Positions 40,931 to 49,498 of a stretch of 64,000 nt of DNA are shown piece by piece. Position numbers and translations under genes: made by a program. How positions within the stretch are numbered: the stretch's first letter is position 1; each line of letters starts with the position of its first letter. The DNA is taken from the NCBI GenBank assembly GCA_038496445.1, contig JALMLS010000440.1, forward strand, positions 1 to 64,000, given 5' to 3'. The notes under the pieces were generated by a model, which had not been told where the DNA came from, did not search any database, and was given only the letters and a program-made list of their open reading frames with translations. This DNA comes from Trichosphaerium sp. ATCC 40318 (lineage: Eukaryota > Protista > Tubulinea).

Positions 40931-40978
40931 GCTTGTGATTTATTGACATACTACTAATACGCCGAATAACAACTTTTT

Positions 40979-43900
40979 TTAAATAACAAGACAAGCACTT
41001 GCTTTATGTCCTTCACGGAATCTTATGCCGGCTTTGATACTATTATTTCTTTCAAGAGTTTCACCACGTCTTATTGACGATACTATATTGTCCATTGGAA
41101 GTAAGTTCTCAACTGTAGCATTTGGTAATGACTTTGCAATGGCCAATGCTTTCTCTACATATTGGATTGCTATTTCGTTTTTTTGATGCCGATTATAAAA
41201 GTACGTCAGTGTCATGTATGTATCAATACATCCAGGATGATCTTCTCCAAATAATGAAGTAAATATAGACAATGCCTAGGGAAAAATGAGTAACGTGGGT
41301 TGTCAAAAAATACAAAAAAACCCTAAGAAGTGAGAATAAAATAAGAATGAAGTTTGGTTTCTTTTTCATGGATGTACTTGTAGGAAATATGATTCTGCGC
41401 TTGAAAAGTCATGACCGTCATAAGCTTCACCAATATCACGTAATATAATTGCCACATCTTCGTGCTCTTCACCGTAGTGACGCTATAAAACAAAATGATT
41501 TTTTGAATTTGATACTAATTTTTACCTTGTAGATATCAAGCACTTTTAGGTAATCTTGTAGACTCTTTCTTATTCCGTATAATGATTGCTTGTTTGCTGC
41601 TACAAGCGCTAAACATCTCGCTGTTTCTATATGATGGAAGCCAAGTAATTTAGTACAAATGTTATACGCCCTATGCGAATTTAGCAGAAGACAAACATAA
41701 AAGTTTCTTACTGTTGTGAGCAAGTGAAGGCTTTTTTGTGATTACTTTGAGCTTGATGAAGACAAGCCAAGTTCTCTACAGGTAAAATAAATAATACCAT
41801 GTTAATACAAACAAGAGAATTTGAAGCATCTCGCAAATGCAGCTTGACAAAGAAAAAAAAAACATACGGAGTATCCTTGCATAGTCAATATGGTCTGTCC
41901 CTAATATTGCTTTTCTTATCTGTTTAACTTTCTCATAACTACGACTGGCTTTAGTGTACATGCCCTTTCTTGCGTATAAAGAGCCCAAATCTACAGCAAA
42001 GAAGTAAGCATGTGAGCTCTTTTTTTTTCTATTGATAAAAAAGATTCACCATTTAGAGTTAAAGCAACCTCTGGGTGTTCATTTCCGAAAACAGATATTC
42101 TAATATCAAGCGCTTGCTGGTATAATTTTTCTGATTTGCTAAAATCCAACTGTGATTGATAGTATGACGCCAAACCTGGTAGGTAGCAAAATTAATCGTA
42201 AATTTTGTTGTCAAGTCAATTTACCGTTCAAGGCCGTCGCAGTATTAGGATGATTATGGCCGAATATCTTATTACTGATATCAATTGATGTTTTAAAATG
42301 AAGTTTTGCCTTGTTATGTTTACTCCAAAGCATATACAGGCCACCCATGTTACTATAAAACAACAACGTAAGAATGGAAAAAACCTTTCTCTTTTTTTTC
42401 TGTGTTCTGCCTTAAATTACGTACTAATGCGTTTTAGATACTTCAGGGTGTACTTTTCCAAGAATCGTTTTTTTAATATCCAAGGACTACAAATGTCAAT
42501 ATTAAAACAGTTATACAAAGGGAACCAAGATGATGTCTTGTTTGGATTTTTTGGTTTTTTTGGTTTATCTAGTACCTTCATGTAAAGTTTCTCAGCTTCT
42601 TCGTACTCACTAAGATCCATATGAATAGCACCTAATATATTTATAGCAGTAGCTACTTTCACATTCAATTCACCAAAAAGATCTTTAAACATCATAATGG
42701 CATTTTTCAACAGCGGCACTGTCGGAAACAAAAAAATAAGTATGAGCAACAAATCTATTTTTAGTTTACCTGACTTATCGTACTTTCCCTGTTGTCTATA
42801 TACTTGAGCCAACCCTTGAATAGACGCAGCTAAATCAGGAGACATTGTCTCATGCGTACGACGGATTGCTAAAGCAGACTCATAGAGTGGAACAGCATGC
42901 TAAAAAAAAGTAAGAAAAAAAGTTTTGTGAATTTTCAGACCTTGCAGCCTCCTGTTATACGATAAATATTAGCCAAATTCTCCATTGCCAAAGCGACTTC
43001 CAATTCATTGCTTTCTTTTCCCAAACGCTTCTTAACACATCTTACAATATTTCTACAGAAAACATAAATAGCCGTCCATCAAAAAAGTGTTTTTTGTCGA
43101 CATACTTGTATAGCAATAGTGCGTTATTGTAACATCCTACATCCTCAAGTAACTTTGCAGCTATAGTTAATTTACTTTCCACTTGCTTTGTTAGATTATG
43201 AAAAGACCTGGAAGAGTATTAGAGATATTTATGAGGAGGAATAGCCCACATTGCTTGTTGAAGAGAAGCGAAGAATTCCTGTTCCATATCAACCGTATTT
43301 CCATTCTCAACAAAATGCCAGTACTTATACAAAGCGAGCTTATCTTGAGAGTATAGATACTCAAAATTTTCAATTATAAAGTCACATAGCTTAGAGTGAT
43401 CTTCAAGACAGTAATATTGATAAGGTAACTAAAGTAAAAAAAAATAAGCAAACGAAAAAAAAAACACCAAAAAAGGCATCCTTAAAACAAGAAAACACGT
43501 GATTGGTTACAAAATGGCAATCAAGCATTATATTAAAGAGAGATTAAATATAGTTTAAGAATGACAAGTATAGTGTGAGTGAGTTGAGATAGCAAATAAA
43601 AATACCGCAAAGGAGGGGTTTTTTTTTGCTTCAAATTGATTGTGTAGTACCTCTTCCAGTTTTCTTTCGTCTTGTCCCTTTATTGCTTTATAATAAGCTG
43701 CTAATTTTAGCCTGTGGAATGAATATCTTTGTTGCCTTTTATTTCTATATTTCCCCATATAGCGTGCTTCAACTGCTTGTCTCATGTGATCATGAAAAAA
43801 AGTGAAATATCCAGACCTTAATCACGTGAGATTGTAAAGTGAACAAACAAAATTCGTTCTTGCTTTTTTCTTACCTTGAAACTAAAGACTCCTCCAGAGC

Positions 43901-46900
43901 TAAGAATAGAGGGCTCCATTGAGCTTGAGGTAAGTTTTCTACACTTAATAGTTCCGTTTCTGTTAAACCTCGCTTTGAAACCCACAAAAGAGATAAAATA
44001 TTACCAACTAAACCGACTTTGTCCTTTGGCTCAAACTCCGTTTCCTTTTAAAAATAATTAGAAATGTTCATAGCTCCGCTCTGTTCTCAAATTACTTACC
44101 AGCCTATTGAACACCATCTCAAATAATTGAGGAAGAGTAATTGCCATCAGATAATGCGTTAGCTTATTATCTAGTTCTTCGAATGATCCAAACACACGCA
44201 GTTCTTCAAGCAAAGTCCTCAAGTACAGCTATACAAAATCAAAAAACAAGCTCAAAAACATGGTGGCATACTGGGTTCTGACACTGCTTTGCATTTATGA
44301 CTCTATCAGTCTGAGTTTGTGTAAGTGTTTTGCCATATCCAGACATGTACTCTGTAACAAGTAAACGGCGTTCAGATGAAGAAAGAGGCTTGATTTCCAT
44401 TGTTTTCCATTTCCTCTTTGTTACTTCATCCATACACCTACGAACATTAAACCACAAAACAATACAATTACACGATAGCTTACGGTCCAGGTAAAGTACT
44501 ACAAACAAGTTTGATACCCTCCGGATAGGTTACAGGAAGCCAACCCAAGTCATGTGCGCCATCACTGGTTTCAAGCTAAACAAAAAAAAAAGTTAGAGAC
44601 TTCTTCTTTACTATCTTTAGGATACTTTGAGTACAAACATACTTGATTAAGAGCATCTAATACGATCACTAGACGTCCTTCTTTAGCGCTTACATCCCTT
44701 AAATATTCTGGAAAAGCTTCAATGACTTCAGTTAAGTTCGTCTTTGGTTCCTTTTCTAGCTAGACAGAAACGAATTTAGATCTCTTCGCATCCTTTACAA
44801 ACGCACGTCAAAGGCTTCTGATATTTCTTGTAATAACCTCGAAAGCATTGCACCTAGATCGGTACTACCTGCAGTACTACCAATATAATGCGCAATAACC
44901 TTGAACAAAGTTAGATAATCAAAATAAACAACTTATTGTTTTGTACTTTGGTGCCTTGATTGCGGCTGTATCTTGATGCAAAGTTACTCATGAACGCACT
45001 TTTACCCTATAAACGTTAATACAAGATAAATTTTGTGCGGAGGAGTAAGTACTTACAGATCCACTTTGACCAACAACTACAAGTGGTTCTGATTGTGTTT
45101 TTAAATGTGTTTCAATCGTTTCAAAATATATATCTCTCCCAACGTATACACGTGCTCTAGATTCTTGAAAAGCATTATGAGCCATACGTTCTTTCTGAAT
45201 AGGTGATGGCGCTTCTTCTTCTGGAAAGTCACGGTCCAAGATGTCCTTAAAGTTGCAGTCAATAAAAATCAAGCGCTACTTCAAAAAAGCTTACGGTTAG
45301 CTGTGTCACAACCATATCCTCTAATTCTGTTGCTTTGGTATAATCAGATACACTAAGACCACTTTGTTTAATCTCGTCTTTCAGAACTGTAAGCCTTGAG
45401 TCGCCATCTTTTCGACTGTTTCAGAAGGTGTTAAGGCATACAAGAAACATTTTAAGCTCCGTACTGATCGTTTCTGAAATAGAACAATGCGTTATCTGCA
45501 GTATGGCTTCTCTTTGTGTTTAATACAGCGTGTCTTATCTCAAGCTCAGTTATACTTCTATCTGTGAATGACGATAGCCATGGGAATTTCTTAGAAGCAT
45601 TTGAAAAAGTCTTATCAAGAAGTTTATCTTGCTTGTTAGGGCTCTATTTCTTTGTTACTACAGCACTCATTCTCTGAGTTTATTTACCTTTGACCAACCA
45701 TATCTATGTCCTAGCATACACAAGAAATATGGACGACACTTGTCAATCTCAGAAAGACATATATCAATAGTGCTTCCGCTCCTTCAAAGAAAAAGTAAGA
45801 TTCTTCAAGCAGTGAGTAAGTCGTACTGTGTCTGAGAAGCTGTGATTCCCCATCTCAAGTCCACGGCAGTTAAAAATAATCCTCTAGACTTACAAAAGCT
45901 TCTCAGCTTAACAAAAGCTCTTTTTATGAGTGCTTCACGCTCAGATTTCATATCAGCGAAAGTAGAGCTAATAAACACTCTAATATTCCTTGACTTAACA
46001 CTATTCTGCCTTTCTTCTTGTTAGAATTTAAGACTATTGATACACTCATATAACGTACTGAATTGTATGCGTTTGAGAAGGGGTAGAAAGCTCTGCAGCA
46101 CTGTGACAAAAAATTAGACGTATGTTTTTTGATGCAACTAGTTTTTTTGATGACGCACTCTTCGAGGTTGTGCTTTGTATCATTGGTCTTTAGTAATCTA
46201 TTTTTTCTATCTGTAAACTCCTCTATCATTATAAACCCTTCATCTAATAGAGTCTTCAAGTTATTTATCAACTTGTCAGTATCTTCAATCCTCGTTTCGT
46301 CAACTTCTGCGCCAACAACTTTAACAGGTCTCTTAAAACAACCATCAACATCAACGTATCCTTCACCACTGTTAGCACATGATGCAGATTCGAAAAGGGA
46401 GATAAGCACATACCAACGTCCCGCAGGGATCTTATAGGTTGTAGACCAGATGGATAAGCAGGTGGCTTATCATAAGCTATAGTAGATTGAGGCATTATAT
46501 CTCGCCAGTATGTATTTACTAAAAACGGCTTTAACTTCATAGTTCTGAACATAGGAAATATTTTGGTAGTAGGTACCTTCAGTATACTCTTCTTCAATAT
46601 GATGTTGCTCGTGTGTCATATCATCATCTTGCTAGTTTATGTCATAAAAAAATGCGAAGATGCACCAAAAAAAAGGCGTACTTGAGCTTTAGCTTGCACA
46701 GTTGCTACAGAAATCATATTACTCCATGATGATTTATTGCTTAAGATATTTCTAGAAGCTGATACTGGGAATACAGCGCGATTCTCATAATTCTCAAGGT
46801 GCAATCTATAGACTTTTTAAGAGAAAAAGACATAGGCAAAGCATTGTACATACTTTCGTCTTTGTTTCGGCTTTTTGCGTTTAGCCATGCTACGTGTTTG

Positions 46901-47989
46901 TACCCGTTGACGAGTATTAGGTTTTGGAGAGGACGATTGGACTTTCTTCTTTACTGTAGTATCTCCAGGTGCTGGTCTTGAGAACGCTGAAGTTTGGACG
47001 CTTGAATAAAATAAGCATAACTAGCTGGTAACAAAACTCTATTGCTTACCCATTTGAAATCTGTTCTACCATGGATTGTATTGCATATTCGACATTTGTT
47101 TCTTCCTTGCTACTCAACTCAATTATGGATATATTAAGTGAGTCACATAGAGCCTGTTAAAAAAAGAGTGAAAAAAAAATATGAATGAATGATTAATTCT
47201 TATTTTTTTCTTACTGACCTTAGCTTCACTAAAAGATACCTGACGTTGGTCAGATCTCTCTGATTTAGTACCAATCACCACGAAAATAGTTTTTATAGAA
47301 TTAGAATATTGTGAGACTTCTTTATACCACGTTTTAACGTGGTTAAAACTTTGTTTATCTGTTATATCATAACTGATAAAATCTATCTTTATCAGAACCA
47401 TATATTAAGTATAACTTACTTCCTGCTGCACCACGATAATAAGCAGTTGTTATCTAAGTAATTTAATAAACCTTACATCATTAGAACACGCACAGAACGA
47501 AATCTTTCCTAAAACAGAAAAACATAAGTCAAAAAAAAAATCTTGCACGTGTTTATTAGTTACCTGTCCAGCTGTATCCCACAGTTGTAGTTTAATCTTT
47601 CTACCATTAAAATCATACTCTCGCACCATCTACAGGCCGTTAAGGTGTCAAAAGTCAAGATAGTCATGACAGGTTTTGTGTTTCACCTAAACGTACAAAA
47701 TCGGCACCTATAGTAGCTTTAAACGCGCTTGTGAATGTTCCATGTACAGCTCGCTTTACAAACGAAGATTTACCAGTCTGACGCCCGTTTAGTACTACTG
47801 TGCTTTTGGCGCTATGAGACGTACGCCAGAATCGCCTGTTATAATCAGTTTGTATATGTCATCTCTAGATGGCCTTCTACGCTATTGTAAGTACGCCATA
47901 GCGTTCATCAATACTGCATACGGCTTTTGTACAGGTTTTACGCGCGTTGATCGGGAAGTACCCTTTGTACCAAACAAAGCGTCAAGCAT
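40979..47989 (-). CDS. Probable single gene: Rab-like GTPase + linker/SHOCT-like helix + DUF4062 + NACHT/STAND NTPase + TPR array + CaaX
   Basis: Rab motifs GDSGTGKS, TIGADF, KLQLWDTAGQERFRS. DUF4062 IRVFISSTFADMKSERE...VDLRWG...CLSEIDKCRPYF..LGHRYGW. Walker A GQSGSGKS, Walker B LVIVLDALNQL. TPRs of the FGNEHPEVA type. Ends CLVI*. The domains are secure; the Rab fusion is inferred from splice signals. Confidence 0.75.
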
Positions 47990-48710: not shown

Positions 48711-49498
48711 ATGGCAACTGAATGTATTATTTCCCTACTGGGCAAAGGAGCAGTCGGGAAAACAGCTACAACACAACAATTCATAAAAAACGATTTTCAG
48801 GCCGAATATGACCCAACCCTAGAAGATGTGTACGTGTAGAGCTTTTGTGTATAACACATTGTTCAAAAAGTCGTAAACAAGCGTCAAACCATTAATAAAC
48901 ATCCAGATATCGTAAAGAAATCAATGTAGACAATATAAATACTGTAATGGATGTTATAGACACAGCAGGAGTTGAAGATTGCGATGCGTCCCTATACCTT
49001 TTTATGAACATTAAACAGGGTAATGGGTTTATTATAATGTACAGCATTACAGATAGAACCTCGTTTGAGGACCTACCAATCTTTTTTGAGAGGATTAGCA
49101 GGTGCGAAAGAGGCTATGTTGAGTGTCTTTATACACCAATGCAAAGTTTCCATGCTGAAATGAAGAATGATGAACCAAAACGGTTTTTTCTGATTGTCAC
49201 GTGATTTTTTTTTGGTTGTGATGCAACTTTCTAATTGCTACACAGGGTCAAAGATCTGGAGCCAATTCCACCTTCATATCCTATTGTACTTGTTGGAAAT
49301 AAAGTAGACTTGGAAAACAAAAGACAAGTGACAACAAAAGAAGGAAAAGAAGTGGCTAAGAAGTACAATTGTGTATTTTTTGAATCATCTGCTAAAACAC
49401 GTGTCAATGTGGATCAAGCCTTTTTTCAGGTTGTTAGACAAATTCGTAAATATAACAGCTCAAGTGCAAAACAACAACGTGCATGTATTGTAATGTGA
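48711..49498 (+). CDS. Ras-family small GTPase (3 exons)
   Basis: GKGAVGKT, effector loop YDPTLED, DTAGV, NKVD, ESSAK, CaaX CIVM. Confidence 0.92.

Follow-up and report, generated by a model that had tools for sequence, protein, structure and literature searches.

The DUF4062 domain is a TIR-like NADase ("NIR"). It is common in Amoebozoa, and many eukaryotic NLR-like proteins carry it N-terminally (bioRxiv 10.64898/2026.05.01.722283; 10.64898/2026.09.04.749371). In vitro, TEP1 was active, and human NPHP3, NWD1, and NWD2 were inactive (bioRxiv 10.64898/2026.05.01.722283). DUF4062/NIR-STAND proteins were recognized as NADase-bearing and NLR-like only in 2026.

We analyzed a candidate gene of this class in a 64,000-nt stretch of DNA from Trichosphaerium sp. 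ATCC 40318 (positions 1 to 64,000 of contig JALMLS010000440.1, GenBank assembly GCA_038496445.1), referred to here as the window; all coordinates without a contig label are window positions. The host genome is eukaryotic, with a size of 70 Mb, a GC content of 36%, and GT-AG introns of ~50 nt. The candidate gene lies on the minus strand and runs from an ATG at 47989 to a TAA at 40981-40979. Thirty-eight GT-AG introns of 37 to 222 nt can join its 39 exons into one continuous open frame of 1,557 codons. A full-length protein model was assembled for frame and coordinate checks only, and domain searches were made on exon pieces. An initial annotation had proposed that a Rab GTPase is fused here to an NLR-like DUF4062-NACHT-TPR protein with a C-terminal CaaX box, and we located each of the features that it listed where it had placed them, on the minus strand. 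The fusion itself is favored, rather than demonstrated, by the statistics of the junction, a missing poly(A) signal, a missing Rab cysteine motif, and a rare CaaX end. On this sequence evidence, we consider it likely (probability of about 70%) that the locus is one gene, which would encode a Rab domain, a linker, a SHOCT-like helix pair, a DUF4062/NIR domain, a STAND NTPase, ~10 TPRs, and a CaaX box.

Rab domain and candidate junction intron

The Rab-family G domain (47050 to 47989, minus strand) is encoded by eight exons of ~193 codons in total (47989-47933, 47881-47825, 47777-47697, 47629-47564, 47508-47494, 47453-47420, 47382-47219, and 47153-47050), which are separated by GT-AG introns of 37 to 67 nt. 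Four of the exon pieces matched Pfam Ras (best E value, 6.6e-12), and the best PDB matches of the exons were Rabs without exception (Ypt6, Rab2, Rab1, Rab23, and Rab32/38). By inspection of the sequence, G1 (GDSGTGKS), switch I (TIGADF), G3 (WDTAGQE), and the RabF motif (RFRSITTAYYRGA) are intact. G4 is degenerate: TKSE (47272-47258) replaces NKxD and aligned opposite GNKSD of Ypt6. The host genome has >1,100 Ras-superfamily candidate matches. Exon 7 was the one Rab exon used as a query against it, and the closest other Rab was 43% identical. The degenerate G4 and this low identity would both fit a decaying or nonfunctional Rab remnant that was captured beside a STAND gene and plays no role in either protein. 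However, all eight Rab exons are open, their splice sites are intact, and G1, switch I, G3, and RabF are preserved, so that a remnant is hardly credible.

The Rab domain ends at helix alpha-5 (...EQISNG), directly after which the frame either stops or splices. As the initial annotation had observed, it has no C-terminal cysteine; the hypervariable tail and any CC, CxC, or CaaX motif are missing as well. The apparent stop codon (GGG TAA, 47051-47046) overlaps a splice donor, GG|GTAAGC, that begins a candidate 49-nt GT-AG intron (47001 to 47049, minus strand; acceptor, ttattcaag). The TAA (47048-47046) thus lies within the donor. Beyond the intron, the frame continues in phase into the exons VQTSAFSRPAP... 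(47000-46854), LHLENYENR... (46805-46682), and QDDDMTHE... (46631-46577), as had been described for this locus. The same in-frame TAA, supplied by a GTAAG donor, is present in two introns of this gene (donors at 44483 and 43874), and both introns were confirmed by homology that runs on across them to P0006, the closest paralog, which is encoded on C103 of this genome. Scored with a position weight matrix (PWM) built from the gene's own introns, the donor of the junction intron reached 7.1 bits and its acceptor 6.4 bits. We simulated random sequence downstream of a fixed G|TAA. An in-phase, open, single-intron link to the frame downstream arose in 7% of cases with lenient thresholds, in 0.3 to 0.6% with splice sites of at least 5 bits, and in 0.03 to 0.12% at the observed splice strength. 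Such a junction thus seldom arises by chance, which favors a fusion; we infer that the splice 47049/47001 is used and takes the Rab "stop" out along with the intron.

Signals for the end of a separate Rab gene were sought at two levels, with 17 small-GTPase genes from this genome, each of a single exon, for comparison. At the RNA level, the first 306 nt beyond the Rab stop contain neither AATAAA nor ATTAAA. AATAAA follows the stop within ~100 nt in 12 of the 17 genes and within 160 nt in 15 (background, 11 to 17%). AATAAA is a poly(A) signal in this organism; in L047, the transcript of the C103 paralog, it precedes the poly(A) tail by 13 nt. At the protein level, all but one of the 17 genes (16/17) end in CaaX or CxC, unlike the Rab part here. 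A CaaX-like end, in turn, was found in just 1 of 163 long NIR-STAND relatives. Since a prenylation signal works only at the extreme C terminus, a cysteine-less Rab beside a family member that ends in CaaX fits a fusion.

Two further observations concern the region between the Rab domain and the STAND gene. First, exon E, which carries the SHOCT-like helix pair, has no in-frame ATG before the pair, and its only one (FIMIEEF) falls inside the pair. Hence, the STAND gene must extend upstream of this exon. Second, 37 codons discriminate between models with one gene and with two. Their codon log-odds value of 0.112 corresponds to the 62nd percentile of coding windows, and their usage looks like that of coding sequence. 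GC content gave no separation between exons and intergenic DNA of this genome.

Several results weigh against a single gene. Hundreds of alternative in-phase GT-AG paths are possible across the locus, so that an in-phase GT-AG chain by itself is uninformative about fusion. The junction donor, which had been described as strong, scored just 2.3 bits with an independent PWM from 33 independently verified introns; the splice-site PWMs are unreliable, with confirmed introns of this gene scoring down to 1.1 bits (donor) and -6 bits (acceptor). Transcripts provided no contig of this gene. L047 (JGI transcript contig, sample 3300016894) encodes P0006 and is ~100% identical to C103 (~76700-82900) across 35 introns, 33 of which were resolved as GT-AG introns of 41 to 97 nt (median, 53). 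Given this match, a transcriptome of this organism is public, and the JGI collection does hold the transcript of the C103 paralog. Nevertheless, scans of this collection for exact DNA matches to the last Rab exon and for protein matches to exon E each returned no contig of the candidate gene. A HMMER search with the DUF4062 exon likewise returned no protein from this gene. Among 265 fetched proteins, none mapped to it at an identity of at least 95%, and only P0006 mapped to this genome (C103).

The arrangement also has no second witness. The initial annotation did not recognize the architecture, and this holds within our sample: a Rab-front layout was seen in none of the ~190 relatives checked, which are a small part of the family. 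A Ras/Rab domain was absent from the 120 relatives listed, from a Pfam scan of 37 N-terminal extensions of relatives, and from a scan for P-loop motifs upstream of the NIR domain in 160 long relatives. Upstream of 12 other DUF4062 loci of this genome, no G domain was found within ~6 to 9 kb, a search of low sensitivity given that canonical Ras queries barely detect even this Rab (E value, 0.04).

The last point against a single gene is that the linker contains an in-frame ATG, at 46888, at which a separate STAND gene could start. The locus would then consist of two neighboring genes in the same orientation, one for a Rab-like protein of 193 residues, without a tail or prenylation, that ends at TAA 47048-47046 and one for a SHOCT-NIR-STAND-TPR-CaaX protein (MAKRKKPKQRRK...). 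Such an arrangement agrees with the low independent score of the junction donor and with the existence of STAND paralogs that have no Rab; one paralog protein, P0151, starts right at the SHOCT-like helix. Cysteine-less Rab-like proteins are also known to exist. However, a mere 158 nt between the stop and the ATG would have to accommodate the end of one transcript (3' untranslated region [UTR] and poly(A) site) as well as the promoter and 5' UTR of the next. The 306 nt after the Rab stop contain no poly(A) signal, and the 37 codons before ATG 46888 are open, in phase, and coding-like. We therefore regard two genes divided at this ATG as rather unlikely.

A second internal ATG, at 46619 (MTHEQHH...), allows another division of the locus. 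The Rab gene would have a long tail through exons A and B, ending by retention of the intron 46681-46632, and the STAND gene would start at 46619. Such a Rab transcript could use the AATAAA at 46741-46736, and an in-frame TAG precedes the ATG. Against this, the STAND promoter would need to sit within the Rab gene, the donor at 46681 scores high (9.2 bits) and gives an in-phase splice to exon C, and the Rab would still be without a cysteine motif. We consider this division very improbable. A single gene, with the Rab domain spliced in frame to the STAND part, is the reading that we retain below.

Downstream exons from the linker to the CaaX box

Four basic, S/P/Q-rich linker exons, A to D (47000-46854, 46805-46682, 46631-46577, and 46476-46414, minus strand), follow the junction intron. 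The linker of ~160 residues is disordered and contains KRKKPKQRRK and a PPAY (PPxY) motif. We found no paralog of the linker in a search of its own genome, and a word search with a 172-residue piece of it gave no match. The PPAY motif lies at 46465-46454, and a PPNY motif is present in the C103 paralog (residues 26 to 29 of P0006); both are in disordered N-terminal regions, where they are possible binding sites for WW domains or NEDD4-type ligases. The intron between exons D and E was set at 46413-46361, which has a CTAAC branch site. An alternative placement at 46409-46369 was dropped in its favor.

Exon E (46059 to 46360, minus strand) encodes the SHOCT-like helix pair (46271-46191) that the initial annotation had pointed out. 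Pfam SHOCT (PF09851) matched it weakly and below threshold over model positions 4 to 28 of 28 (15.2 bits versus a cutoff of 27; E value, 0.018), and seven of nine relatives gave the same subthreshold match. A SHOCT-like motif stands 45 to 70 residues before the first NIR strand in 19 relatives, and it is also present in the paralogs on C7 and C103. A 66-nt intron is possible within exon E, at 46158-46093. This boundary and the boundary at 43293/43186 are uncertain in the gene model.

The DUF4062/NIR domain is encoded by three exons (45465 to 46005, minus strand). Pfam DUF4062 (PF13271) scored above its cutoff of 24.7 bits on two of them (26.5 and 31.9 bits) and reached 55.1 bits in a genome search, in agreement with the initial assignment. 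The first strand, RVFISSTF, lies at 45981-45958, and the catalytic-Glu motif, SITELEI, lies at 45556-45536. SITELEI aligned opposite SVTEMEV of TEP1 in PDB 11gz; this match was weak (E value, 0.43). From the chain numbering, the second E of SITELEI would correspond to E1008. On C75 of this genome, a TEP1-like locus aligns across this Glu motif with an E value of 2e-56. We concluded that the NIR domain is a putative TIR-like NADase with its catalytic-Glu motif intact.

The region that follows (43106 to 45415, minus strand) was assigned as a putative STAND P-loop NTPase with a helical region from its Walker motifs and by comparison with the paralog. Walker A (GQSGS|GKS, 45071-44998) is split by an intron, and Walker B (LVIVLDALN) lies at 44672-44646. 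The NACHT domain proposed for this part has these motifs and the PF05729 (NACHT) domain of P0006 in its favor; at the level of single exons, nSTAND1 scored 20.1 bits against a cutoff of 27.1, and NPHP3_hel was also below threshold. Identity of the NTPase-region exons to P0006 was 13 to 81% in an alignment that is partly misaligned, and 40 to 81% for the well-aligned exons. This alignment of exon pieces consists mostly of gap columns and was not used as a search profile.

The TPRs, for which the exon model was guided by P0006, are ~10 repeats of the NPHP3/kinesin-light-chain type in 11 exons (40994 to 43052, minus strand). TPR_12 (E value, 6.3e-11; 42.8 bits) and TPR_10 (E value, 1.6e-9; 37.9 bits) matched them, as expected from the initial annotation, and TPR_NPHP3 was below its cutoff. 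The predicted end of the protein, CLVI followed by the stop codon TAA, was confirmed at 40993-40979 on the minus strand and has a Cys-aliphatic-aliphatic-X sequence at the extreme C terminus. The X residue is I, and the box resembles the CLVL ending of RhoA. A poly(A) signal, AATAAA (40939 to 40944, minus strand), lies 34 nt after the stop. By inference from the CaaX box, the protein would be a membrane-anchored STAND receptor.

Two neighbors or relatives of these domains were observed in passing. A Ras/Rap-like small GTPase gene (MATECIISLLGKGAVGKT...) occupies 48711-49447 on the plus strand, head-to-head with the Rab gene and ~720 nt from the Rab ATG. On C75 (~169500-171400, minus strand), an open exon of 445 codons matched the solved TIR-like domain of human TEP1 (E value, 2e-56). 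By this match, the organism's TEP1 (vault/telomerase) ortholog is probably located here.

Paralogs and a possible decoy

Among named relatives, those of Balamuthia and Pelomyxa (both Amoebozoa) are closest to the STAND gene. In a SHOCT-NIR-STAND-TPR paralog on C7 (~221970-222080, plus strand), the first exon matches residues 1 to 29 of histone H3 at 28 of 30 positions. This H3-tail exon has a GT donor at its end, after which an AT-hook-like RGRPRKP is found. No histone fold follows the exon, and no AATAAA was found before the SHOCT exon 720 nt downstream or before the NIR exon. In-frame GT-AG chains from the H3-tail exon to the SHOCT exon exist and are ambiguous. By eye, other DUF4062 loci seem to differ in their upstream modules, with ankyrin-like repeats on C10 and BRCT-type and IPT-type stretches on C107, C16, and C14.

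If the candidate protein works as an NLR-like switch, by analogy its TPRs would hold it off until a ligand binds, and the STAND NTPase would then drive oligomerization. The clustered NIR domains would hydrolyze NAD+, causing arrest or death. The CaaX box would anchor the protein to a membrane by a prenyl group, and this anchor together with the Rab-like domain would place or gate the switch on an endomembrane, e.g., that of the phagosome.

The initial annotation had suggested that the Rab domain might be a decoy for Rab-targeting effectors of intracellular bacteria. In an extended form of this idea, SHOCT-NIR-STAND-TPR proteins would carry N-terminal baits that copy pathogen targets, a Rab here and the H3 tail in the C7 paralog, and the action of an effector would release a membrane-anchored NADase death switch. 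The near-exact histone H3 tail at the start of a paralog of the same subfamily speaks for such a function. Against it, the Rab makes a poor mimic, because exon 7, the exon searched, is at most 43% identical to the other Rabs of the genome. We regard the extended form of the idea as improbable. Legionella effectors are known to target both Rabs and histone H3, so that a bait function is worth testing.

A gene with a Rab at its front and a prenylation signal at its end, together with a sister gene that has an H3 tail, could hint at where these switches sit (membrane or chromatin) and what they watch. If the bait reading is true, it would represent an integrated-decoy system that evolved outside plants. 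The two genes would make integrated decoys directly testable in amoebae, which Legionella-like bacteria naturally use as hosts.

Comparison with known systems

Among described systems, NIR-STAND-TPR NLR-like proteins of the NPHP3/TTC41 type, from Amoebozoa and animals, share with the candidate protein a DUF4062 domain at the N terminus, with the conserved Glu motif, as well as a P-loop NTPase of the STAND class (putative in the candidate) and TPRs of the NPHP3/kinesin-light-chain type. Unlike the gene described here, none of those examined has a Ras/Rab domain, and all but one of the 163 lack a CaaX-like end. Human NPHP3 is anchored by N-myristoylation, not by C-terminal prenylation.

Plant NLR proteins with an integrated decoy (NLR-ID) likewise have a domain resembling a host target attached to an NLR-type switch, and the H3-tail copy of the C7 paralog is in the same position as the Rab. 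The lineage and the type of NOD differ here, and the extra domain stands ahead of the effector domain.

ROCO proteins (Roc-COR; LRRK2 family), which are common in amoebae, also contain a Ras-like G domain within a large, repeat-containing signaling protein. Unlike them, the gene here has a putative STAND-type NTPase. Membership in the ROCO family was considered and rejected: Pfam Roc scored 23.2 bits against a cutoff of 27, which was weaker than Ras on the main exon, and COR matched none of the pieces.

With Rab GTPases, finally, the domain shares the G1, switch I, G3, and RabF motifs. It differs from them in having TKSE for NKxD, no tail, and no CC or CxC, and the sole prenylation signal here is the CaaX box, which lies ~1,360 residues downstream of the G domain.

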